Origin: Adineta vaga
Taxonomy: Eukaryota > Animalia > Rotifera
Reading direction: 5' to 3'
NCBI GenBank assembly: GCA_021613535.1
Contig: CP075497.1
Location: forward strand, 9,858,001-9,922,000
Length of the DNA: 64,000 nt
The position numbers and the translations under genes were made by a program. Positions 3 to 44,103 of the stretch are shown here, piece by piece. The notes beneath the pieces are model-generated. The model did not search any database, was not told where the DNA came from, and saw only the letters and a list, made by a program, of their open reading frames with translations. Every line of letters starts with the position of its first letter. The first letter of the stretch is position 1.

Positions 3-593
3 ACACCACCAATACAAAATGATCAAGAATTTATTCAAACAATGATTACACAAGGAAAAAGAAAACGAAAATCAGATGTTGATAATAATCCATCAAGTGT
101 AAAAATACGTCGAATTACTATTAAAAGTGAACCCGAACAGGTTATATTCAATTCAAACATTGTTGATTTTGATTGAAAATATTTCCTTTCTTTTCTCTAG
201 CCATCCAATAATCCACCACCATCGATTCTATTTCGACATTCGAATGAACAACCAATTGTAATGTGTTCAAATTTTGTTTGTCATAGTTTATCACCAACAG
301 AAGAAACTTTTATAATAGATGCAATAGCACGTTCTGGTCCGAATTGTACATTTTTTGAAGCGAAACAAATCGCTGAAGAAATGTATTCAAATATCATTTG
401 TGTGAATAATTCTAATCGTCAGTTACCTGTTAGTGAAATATGGTTCTATTTATTTTTCTATTTGCATTGTGAAAAATTATTTTCCACACATCGTCATTGG
501 CTTCATGATCTTGAAAATGCCAAAAACAATACTAGTTATCTATACGAACAACAACAACAAATAATTCGTCTAATGAAAACTTATCTTCATTAG
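3..593 (+). CDS. 3' end of a gene truncated by the window edge; C-terminal domain homologous to the PWWP gene at 41035 (CENP-B/Tc5-HTH-like)
   Basis: Open frame 3-140 (KRKRK NLS-like, IKSE), GT-AG intron 141-200, last exon 201-593 in frame. LSPTEE..DA..G..TF.EA.Q.A..WFY.F..H aligns ungapped to 42742-42976. Confidence 0.75.
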
Positions 594-41034: not shown

Positions 41035-43273
41035 ATGAGTGCTGAACCGATGACTTCTTCGACAGAACAAACCGAATCTGTAGCAAATACATCAACAGTA
41101 GAAACGGCTGCTGACAATATTACAGAAAATACTGAAGTAAAACCAGTCAATGGTGCGGATGAAGAAGCAATGATAACAACGGAAAATAGTACCGGTAAAC
41201 GAAAACGATCAATAAAGAAAGTTGTTGAAAATACAGATAGTATTTCTAATGGACGTCCAAAACGTACCTTATCAAAACGTAAGTTAAAGAAAAATCATTT
41301 ATATCGATCTATAATATATGTCAATGTTAAGGTGAAGAAGTGCCAACACCTGTGATGAATGGTGCAGGAAAAGGAAATAAATCAAAAGTTGAACAAGTAA
41401 ATAATGATGATGAAGATGATGAACAAGAACGTGATAAGAATATTCCCGTACTCTATGATGTTGCTGATGTTGTGTGGGTAAAAATGGGTGGGCATCCATG
41501 GTAAGATTATCATTTTACTTGTTATGATTTTTACATGATGTTCTATTAGGTGGCCAAGTCTTATAATTCGAGACCCAAACGACTCTAGTGGAAATTTTAC
41601 TAAAGTATCTGGTATGTGATGAATTTTGAAAAAAGAATAATATAAGTATATATATATATATTTACAAATGTTAGGCAATGCTCGAGCAAAACGAATGTAT
41701 TTTGTTGTCTTCTATGGTTCAACAGCTGACTTTGCTTGGGTTTCCGATGCAGCAGTCATCGAATATAATGGTGTAGAAGCTTTTACTAAATATGCACAAG
41801 AAAATGTTGATAAAGTACGAATAATGATTACTGATGAAGAAGACCAGTCATTCATTTATAACTGTTTATAGGCACAAACAAAATCACAAAAAGAACAATT
41901 GACAGAACGATTTCAATTGAAAGTAACCATTGGTCGCCGTGAAGATTGGGAATCAGCAGTGCGTGAAGCTGATGATGCAATCAAACAAACTAGTGAAAAA
42001 CGTCTTGAAAATATCGAACCAAAGATTCACTTTTATACAAAGAAAATCGGTAAGAATATCAACATTCTAAATTTATTTATTTTTATTGTTTCTTCTCTTC
42101 AAGGTACTCCAAAAAGTCAAGGTGGTCGTCGACCAAAAGTACCGATAACAAAATCAGAAGAATCATCGGAACCTATGTTAACATCAACTATGGATCCTGC
42201 TGATCGTTCTTTATTGGCAGAAAAAACATTTGAATTTAAATCTGATGAAGAAGATTCAATACCTGAAACACCACTTCGAAAAATGCCATCTGTCAAAATA
42301 AAACTTAGTAAACAAGTATCTAACGATTCAGATTCAAATATAACACCACCATCCAAACGTACTTTAATACGTAAATCTGGTGCAATTGACGATAAACAAA
42401 GTTCTAATCCGCCAACAACTATTTTTGGTCAAACAGCCAATGGATCATCTGTTTCATACCAACAACGAGAACCGATTACTAATGCTGTCGATACGACTCC
42501 AACTAAATCGAATCCAACAGAAATGGTCAATGGTACAGGCAGTGCAAAGAAACGAGGACGACCAAGTGCTAATAAATCATCCGTATCATCAAGTAACGAC
42601 GATAGTCCAGCACCGGAATTTCATTCAGCAAGTCCATCGGTCACAACTAAATTTACTACACAAAGAAAACCAATTCAAAAACCACAAGCATTTATGAATT
42701 CATCTGTTTCTAGTGGTCAACATGATATCCGAACTGGGTTCTTATCACCATTTGAAGAACAAGAAGTACTTGATGCTCTTGATCAATTAGGTTCAACTAA
42801 AACATTTGAAGAAGCTGAACAAAAAGCAAAACGTCGATTTGAACATATTCTTTGTTTGAATCTTAATCGTACTCATGTAGATATTCCACAAGAATGTAAG
42901 TTACATATTTTTATTTTGTTTGAATATCTATATATCTATTTGTTTCCTAGGGTTTTATACCTTTTTGTTTTCACATCCATCATTAGTTATGAAGAATCCA
43001 CAATGGTTTTCTGACAAGAATAGTTCAGATACATTAAATGAGACTGATCTATTAAACAATGTTCAATCATCAAGTAGTTTAGCTGTACTTAAACATCAAC
43101 TTGTTGTTTTATCGAAATTATATCGTAATGAATTACAAGTTCGACCATCTGCATCTGCCAAAAACCGACGATCAACAGGCACTGGTGGTGGAAAACGAAA
43201 ATCAATGGAAAAAAAGCAAGATTTCGAAGAAGAAATTAATATGGATGACGATGAAGAAGAACTTATTAATTGA
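41035..43273 (+). CDS. Chromatin protein: NSD-type PWWP domain, AT-hook and C-terminal CENP-B-HTH-like domain; no SET domain
   Basis: YDVADVVWVKMGGHPWWPS (PWWP split by an intron), YFVVFYG..FAWV, WESAVREA; AT-hook KKRGRPS; C-terminal LSPFEE..WFYTFLFSHPSL. Confidence 0.85.
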
Positions 43274-44103
43274 ATATTGTACAAACAAACAGACATCAAA
43301 TAATATTTTTGCTTTTCTTATCTAAACTGTACATTACACTTTTTTTCTTCTTCTTCTATTCATGTATGTTTGCGTAGCTATCAAAAAACCCCCAAATACC
43401 ATGTATGTTAGATATGCTGAGTTAAACTCAATGATTATCAATGATAGTAGAAAGAATATCTAGATGTGTGTATGTGTGTGTATCTCGTATTCGTTAAATT
43501 GATTATTTTCTTCTTGTATTTGTTCAATCGGTTAGTATGTTACTACTGTTGTTCTTGCTGTTTTCGTCTCATTTGAAGAAAATAATAAATATCCTCTTTT
43601 TTTTCGTAAAATCGAAAGCATTTTGTGTCATGCATTCTACTACAAGAATAATCATGATAGAATATGCACGAGAGCAAAGATAAGTATGAGGGTATTCCCT
43701 CTCGAATCTTTGTCACATTTTTTTGCTATCTTAGAAGTGAATATCAGTGAAATGATCATTAAAGGAATATTTGTATTAAGAAGGATAAATAATCGATTGA
43801 ATCGTTTTGAACTTTCGCAGGTAGTATGAATGAAATAGATTCGAAAAATTCGTTGCTACAGTAATTTCATTCGACATTCACCTGTCACACTACAGAAAAA
43901 AAACGCATTTTGTTTTAATATTAAGATAGAAATACAAATGAAAAGCAATGATAAAGAAAAAATATATAGAAACTTGTCTAACAACACGCAAAGCATTGAA
44001 GAAGAAAAGAAAATCAAAAGAGAACCCAATTTTAGTCATGATATTTTGATGTATCTATATCTGACATCCAGTGGATGATAAACTAACATTATTCATTTTT
44101 CAT

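Follow-up and report, generated by a model that had tools for sequence, protein, structure and literature searches.

A bdelloid-restricted family of PWWP proteins with an acidic, helical C-terminal domain whose closest known kin is the Tc5/CENP-B helix-turn-helix

The subject of this analysis is a stretch of 64,000 nucleotides from the bdelloid rotifer Adineta vaga (GenBank assembly GCA_021613535.1, contig CP075497.1, positions 9,858,001 to 9,922,000 of the forward strand), called the window below, and within it a single gene at positions 41035-43273 of the + strand. The gene has seven exons, with GT..AG introns read from the sequence, and encodes a 635-residue protein with a PWWP domain, AT-hooks and a compact, helical C-terminal domain of about 80 residues. 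It is this last domain, and its resemblance to the helix-turn-helix (HTH) of pogo-like transposases and CENP-B, that chiefly concerns us. The features of the gene are as follows.

41035..43273, + strand: protein-coding span of the gene for the PWWP, AT-hook and C-terminal-domain protein; seven exons of 1908 nt in total, stop included
41035-41278, 41332-41500, 41550-41611 and 41675-41814, + strand: exons 1-4, GT..AG introns in the sequence
41872-42049, 42104-42895 and 42951-43273, + strand: exons 5-7, GT..AG introns in the sequence
41248..41268, + strand: N-terminal AT-hook-like motif NGRPKRT (residues 72-78), with R74, P75 and R77 invariant
41466..41979, + strand: PWWP domain (residues 127-241) in exons 2-5, Pfam PF00855, NSD2-PWWP1-like, with cage positions H136, W139 and F171
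42547..42564, + strand: canonical AT-hook core KKRGRP (residues 413-418), from sequence and conservation
42736..42895, + strand: part 1 of the core C-terminal domain (residues 476-528 and the first base of the W529 codon), with helix 1, helix 2 and a loop, from AlphaFold2 (AF2) and conservation
42896..42950, + strand: 55-nt intron inside the C-terminal domain, its joint 42895->42951 seen in runs X1, X3 and X5 and absent from the DNA-like run X15
42951..43024, + strand: part 2 of the core domain (residues 529-553), with helix 3, EWFYTFLFSHP, and two short helices, from AF2 and the family alignment A3
43058..43150, + strand: amphipathic helix (residues 565-595, SSSSLAVLKHQLVVLSKLYRNELQ), with invariant columns Q567-R593, from AF2; found in distant paralogs too
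43274..43470, + strand: likely 3' untranslated region; contig pieces of X1 and X3 stop at 43470, although contig ends cannot prove a transcript end

Comparison of the database sequence with the seven exons identifies the product as P0001, the A. vaga hypothetical protein I4U23_030376 at NCBI (635 residues). P0001 was reached by a word search with the open reading frame covering exon 6, and the 100% identity seen there refers to the exon-6 region. The original prediction had described a 63-residue peptide visible only after splicing. This peptide is residues 478-540 of the product and is encoded exactly as described, with LSPFEE...DIPQE at 42742-42894, in the tail of the 792-nt exon, and FYTFLFSHPSL at 42953-42985, past the GT..AG intron that splits the W529 codon between its t and its gg. 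The span first given for the feature, 42742-42990, begins at the right place and ends some 5 nt too far. Contigs from three RNA-like runs in two studies carry the joints 41278>41332, 41499>41549, 41814>41872, 42048>42103 and 42895>42951, covering five of the six introns; the sixth sits in a repeat that was skipped in the contig comparison. The DNA-like run from this organism gives an unspliced contig, colinear with the genome, and we therefore regard the gene as expressed and spliced as modelled. In one contig of run X3, position 41423 is linked to 43244 by way of 12 additional letters; the two sides of this joint fall in acidic, GAT/GAA-rich coding stretches, and it is most likely an assembly chimera rather than an isoform.

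Every structural statement in this text rests on predicted models. In an AF2 model built from a diverse family alignment (m536ce7c9f336; predicted local distance difference test, pLDDT, 85.5; predicted template-modelling score, pTM, 0.75), residues 471-553 form a confident, compact helical domain. The first two helices occupy model residues 10-22 (13 residues) and 29-48 (20 residues) and are followed by a 10-residue loop and a short third helix, EWFYTFLF, at model residues 59-66. Two extra short helices (68-73 and 75-78) then terminate in the invariant pair W547-F548, and the residues W, F, Y and W are invariant in family alignment A3. A separate amphipathic helix appears at residues 571-592 in a second AF2 model (md33def44652e, model residues 117-138, pLDDT 62-79).

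Together with the PWWP domain, residues 455-595 are the best-conserved part of the protein among 16 bdelloid orthologs, with a mean column identity of 81%. Between the A. vaga ohnologs on C6 and C3, the C-terminal domain gives a nonsynonymous rate (dN) of 0.19 and a synonymous rate (dS) of 0.99 over 77 codons, the two exon parts being treated separately and the split codon dropped, for a dN/dS of about 0.19. The domain is thus under purifying selection. Because the stretch is nearly invariant in the orthologs and constrained between the ohnologs, it is not due to chance. We found no Pfam family for the module in each exon translation or in the whole protein, and Pfam searches of 16 family domains at E <= 10 gave scattered single matches only, so the initial description of the domain as unannotated is borne out.

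Searched exhaustively with a HMMER profile, 1.84 billion cluster representatives yielded 29 proteins at E <= 1e-3. The named ones are all from bdelloids (Adineta, Rotaria and Didymodactylos) and the remainder are metagenome fragments, in keeping with the suggestion that the protein is lineage-specific. A word-based search with the PWWP region likewise found bdelloid proteins only, within a length window of 350-1111 residues that leaves longer NSD proteins outside it. The weaker family matches, at 23-33% identity to the C-terminal domain of this gene, are paralogs with a common plan of PWWP domain, KKKRGRKPK hook and C-terminal domain. A scan of the A. vaga genome with the family profile found 14 loci, including this gene and its C3 ohnolog. 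A PWWP exon lies upstream of at least seven of them, and the PWWP domain is present wherever the upstream part is readable. Three loci (L011, L014 and L018, at 5952814, 5954751 and 5956612) stand in tandem on C1 within about 4 kb (G000:C1:5952814-5956905). A further member lies in the same window, 42 kb upstream of this gene.

261..593, + strand: final exon of another, divergent member of the family, from an A3 profile match (G000:C6:9858276-9858515, E 2.2e-23) and an open reading frame

This second gene is the ortholog of Rotaria sordida P0081 and has WFYLFFYLH as its helix 3. Only its last exons fall within the window; its PWWP exon (G000:C6:9857351-9857461) is about 0.9 kb upstream, beyond the window edge. 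The architecture first taken for a lone fusion protein is therefore real but not solitary, and what we have is an old, expanded, bdelloid-restricted gene family rather than a one-off fusion. The C-terminal domain is interrupted by an intron in L014, L018, L019 and this gene and is encoded by a single exon in other paralogs. The intron falls after EWFY, inside helix 2 or, as here, before W529, and because the positions differ among paralogs, these introns were gained or lost after the family expanded. The 1272-residue gene model of Didymodactylos carnosus P0076, with two PWWP-plus-domain units, is probably two tandem genes merged by the gene predictor.

The PWWP domain is the sole Pfam domain in the product (residues 127-241; 56 bits, cut-off 25.6). 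Among solved structures NSD2 PWWP1 comes closest (E 1.3e-28), followed by NSD3 PWWP1 (E ~4e-17), and on the strength of that best match we assign it to the NSD type. Pfam gives no SET, AWS/post-SET or PHD match in the 635-residue protein, which is not an NSD enzyme. Residue alignment with NSD2 PWWP1 places H136 on Y233, W139 on W236 and F171 on F266, the three NSD2 residues that we take to be the methyl-lysine aromatic cage. H136, whose codon at 41493-41495 lies within GHPWWP, is invariant in all 15 orthologs aligned, while other paralogs have tyrosine or phenylalanine at the same position; a histidine at the first cage position may alter methyl-lysine binding or make it pH-dependent. From the similarity to NSD2 only, we infer that the domain may read methylated lysine 36 of histone H3 (H3K36me); one cage residue is here a histidine. 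The AT-hook core KKRGRP has the R-G-R-P sequence with basic flanks. Its K414, R415, G416 and R417 are invariant in orthologs, and distant paralogs have KKKRGRKPK instead; there are two weaker AT-hooks, at residues 72-78 and 271-278. An NSD-type PWWP domain with an AT-hook and neither SET nor PHD is what had been predicted for the N-terminal part, and each of these points stands.

The linker between the PWWP and C-terminal domains is long and disordered, with conserved short motifs. One of these, VKIKLSK (residues 328-334, window 42292-42312), is an invariant alternation of lysine and hydrophobic residues, similar to the IKLKI-type peptide that NSD3 and others use to bind the extraterminal (ET) domain of BET proteins. 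Should the likeness hold, this protein might link BET proteins to chromatin.

Several lines of comparison point to the same relative for the C-terminal domain. By ESM Atlas features, the nearest named clusters to this protein carry PF03221, the HTH_Tnp_Tc5 family (score 0.88, a lead only), and paralog P0084 (about 31% identity) scores higher, at 0.94 with 171 features in common, 26 of its 30 best matches carrying PF03221. By shape, the three nearest entries are all PF03221, one of them consisting of full pogo transposases with DDE_1, and the best template-modelling (TM) score is 0.73 by target over 72 aligned residues with a root-mean-square deviation of 2.4 A. By the Atlas's own caveats, a TM above 0.5 says little when the stretch is short, and 4-10% of shuffled proteins also score 0.9 or higher. 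The reference profile was made by aligning 11 intact Tc5 HTHs taken from pogo-like loci of A. vaga. Against it, hhalign gives the family P 0.0038, and P 0.0007 with a probability of 26% when five A. vaga paralogs are added. In every case the second helices of the two families coincide and EWFY..F falls on W...F, a constant register that also agrees with the L(S/T)xxEE start. The real score was not attained in any of 200 column shuffles, and control alignments of DEP, Tc3 and homeodomain sequences, built alike, give P 0.05-0.24. With HMMER, a Tc5 hidden Markov model reaches 9.2 bits at best against family members, the maximum of 200 shuffles being 8.8 bits. The likeness to a pogo/CENP-B HTH that was originally proposed is thus upheld in that Tc5 is the nearest of the known families by features and shape, with hhalign and HMMER scores above the controls, but homology stays below conventional significance. 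On balance, the C-terminal domain somewhat probably descends from an HTH of the Tc5/CENP-B type.

If so, the descendant differs markedly from its source in charge. For the 16 family domains the net charge is -4.0, every member being acidic (range -9 to 0), compared with +4.7 +/- 2.4 for 58 genuine Tc5 HTHs. In the 13 residues from the conserved tryptophan, the window of helix 3, the net charge is 0 in the family and +2.0 in Tc5 HTHs, and the putative recognition helix, at -2 to +1 across the family, is net positive in only one of the 16 members. Conserved hydrophobic residues dominate this helix, which is followed by the extra helices, a profile unlike that of a recognition helix. The R and H of the RH motif vary across the family, and the K/R-R-H run expected after W...F in a basic DNA-binding surface is not found. 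Because the domain is acidic where real Tc5 HTHs are basic, classical DNA binding by it is unlikely, and it probably binds proteins rather than DNA. Altered DNA binding had been suspected from a single R-to-S change; an acidic domain with a third helix that is not net positive makes a stronger case for it.

We favour, with a probability of roughly one half, the reading that the protein is a bdelloid-specific chromatin reader or adaptor with a C-terminal domain derived from a pogo-like Tc5/CENP-B HTH. A Tc5/CENP-B-type HTH of a pogo-like transposase would have been captured before the bdelloid radiation, and would then have lost its basic DNA-contact surface and gained the extra C-terminal helices. 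Through the PWWP domain and AT-hooks the protein would be held to AT-rich DNA and to nucleosomes, plausibly those bearing H3K36me, while the acidic C-terminal domain and the amphipathic helix would dimerize or recruit partner proteins. Docking or dimerization is proposed because the charge is reversed and the third helix is unlike a recognition helix. The mode of action would be analogous to that of LEDGF/p75 or NSD3-short, without membership of either family.

A number of results weigh against this reading. The hhalign probability is only 5-26%, reversed-sequence controls score 16.4-16.8 where the real alignment scores 20.0, and adding 55 database fragments to the Tc5 alignment fails to raise the score, with P 0.042 untrimmed and P 0.008 when trimmed to the domain. 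There is no PF03221 match at E <= 10 in P0001, its C-terminus or the 16 family domains, the gathering cut-off being 22.2 bits; the genome-wide PF03221 matches at E <= 10 do not include the family loci, and the family profile misses the pogo loci. Pfam finds only the PWWP domain in P0001 and its relatives, with no psq HTH or DDE remnant, and the protein is not a pogo transposase. One of the three aromatic-cage residues is histidine in place of tyrosine or phenylalanine, and adaptor function, H3K36me reading and dimerization are each a proposal. The domain is not formally a member of HTH_Tnp_Tc5 in Pfam; it founds a new bdelloid-specific family of which the Tc5 HTH is the closest known kin.

The same results lend themselves to a different explanation, that the domain is a small, lineage-specific helical domain that arose de novo or from some other helical domain, its Tc5 likeness being that of any three-helix bundle with a core of W and F. 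The lack of conventional significance, the reversed-profile controls at 80-85% of the real hhalign score, the cautions attached to ESM Atlas scores, the opposite charge and the extra helices all fit this view. So do fold searches of the Protein Data Bank (PDB), which give many unrelated helical structures at similar Z. CENP-B is not among the fold-search matches of the predicted domain and there is no PDB sequence match for the module; the one Tc5 HTH in the PDB, CENP-B 1HLV, has 54 residues and ends inside helix 3. Set against this are the agreement of language-model features, predicted shape and profile-profile comparison in selecting Tc5 among the known families, the stronger selection of Tc5 by the 31%-identical paralog, and a constant register that fits both L(S/T)xxEE and W...F, with the three control HTH families clearly lower. 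We consider an origin without any transposase unlikely, though it is the most serious competitor to an HTH origin.

It is more doubtful still that the domain works as a transposase-derived HTH to this day, binding specific DNA such as pogo terminal repeats or miniature inverted-repeat transposable elements and so coupling H3K36 methylation to transposon control. This proposal draws on the same Tc5 resemblance as the explanation that we favour, and potential pogo targets do exist, since PF03221 matches in A. vaga number at least 27 at E <= 0.001, with 31 above the Pfam cut-off at E <= 10; the adjacent AT-hooks could add DNA affinity. The acidity of every member, the hydrophobic recognition helix and the unconserved arginine of the RH motif speak otherwise, and the loss of the basic surface argues against direct binding to transposon ends, which we regard as possible but disfavoured.

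A divergent DEP-like or other winged-helix domain, or a bundle of the LEDGF integrase-binding domain (IBD) or TFIIS-N-like type as in other PWWP adaptors, is very improbable. In its favour, the second DEP domain of DEPTOR heads the PDB sequence-profile matches, over about 50-70 residues, and the architecture parallels that of LEDGF/p75. However, the E of 0.2 is not significant, the A. vaga DEP domains align less well than Tc5 in hhalign (P 0.056-0.17), the AF2 model consists of helices only, without a beta wing, and there is neither a LEDGF or Med26 Pfam match nor an IBD or TFIIS N-terminal domain (TND) chain in the PDB fold lists. The LEDGF-type IBD was dropped as a candidate for want of any sequence or fold signal. 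We treat the DEPTOR match (E 0.2) and a PBX homeodomain match (E 0.6) from the PDB profile search as noise, because hhalign against the A. vaga DEP and homeodomain sets gives P 0.05-0.17, below Tc5.

Returning to the chromatin adaptor with a captured HTH, a wider history can be sketched, tentatively. An NSD-derived PWWP reader may have captured a pogo HTH before the bdelloid radiation, after which the HTH became an acidic docking module and the gene expanded to a dozen or more chromatin adaptors. With its tandem clusters and retained ohnologs, such a family would tether different partners to methylated chromatin, and transposase-related proteins, repair factors and silencing factors are candidate partners. 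PWWP readers usually tether something to methylated chromatin, and the partner defines the biology. To our knowledge bdelloids are asexual and lack canonical DNA methyltransferases, and the family may have a role in transposon control via recruited partners.

What was found is an undescribed, strongly conserved, bdelloid-restricted C-terminal domain multiplied to 14 loci in one genome, in animals that are studied for unusual transposon control, DNA repair and epigenetics. Should the pogo HTH origin be true, the family would show clearly how a transposase DNA-binding domain, once captured, was repurposed as a non-DNA-binding module, and would be a PWWP-transposase fusion. Literature searches for PWWP with bdelloid and for PWWP with host-transposase fusion found nothing relevant, and no paper in the library searched combined both terms of such a fusion. 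Even if the Tc5 origin fails, the new domain merits a Pfam entry and the proteins are a tractable set of readers.

The known system closest to the C-terminal domain is HTH_Tnp_Tc5/CENP-B (PF03221; 1HLV), the second DNA-binding domain of pogo and Tigger transposases and of CENP-B. Both domains have about 70 residues and three core helices, and they share the L(S/T)xxEE start and the W...F aromatic pair in the third helix; Tc5 is the best of four HTH families in hhalign and the nearest by ESM Atlas features and shape. Unlike Tc5, the family domain is acidic, it has a hydrophobic helix 3 (EWFYxFLL) from which the K/R-R-H run is missing, and it carries two extra short helices with an invariant WF as well as the further amphipathic helix. 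It has no psq HTH upstream and no DDE_1 downstream, it is always attached to a PWWP domain, and the Pfam model is blind to it.

In the N-terminal half, the likeness to PWWP1 of NSD2 and NSD3 includes the helical extension after the barrel. NSD3-short, a PWWP-only isoform with an adaptor role, also has no catalytic domain and is about the same size. The differences from the NSD proteins are the lack of SET, PHD and HMG domains, the change of cage Tyr233 to His, and a C-terminal domain without an NSD counterpart. LEDGF/p75 and HDGFL2 combine a PWWP domain and AT-hooks with a C-terminal IBD, so that PWWP, AT-hook and helical C-terminal domain in our protein parallel LEDGF/p75. The order is the same, from an N-terminal PWWP through AT-hooks in a disordered linker to a small helical C-terminal domain, and it is because of this order that we propose a tethering mechanism. 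The PWWP domain, however, is of the NSD and not the HDGF type, and Pfam and fold searches give no IBD or TFIIS-N signal.

POGK, POGZ and KRABINER are host-transposase fusion genes with a captured transposase DNA-binding domain. Like them, the bdelloid proteins join a host chromatin or regulatory domain to an apparent pogo-type HTH without the catalytic DDE domain. The bdelloid case would differ in that the partner is a PWWP domain, the fusion is ancient and has expanded to a family, and the captured domain has lost its resemblance to a DNA binder.

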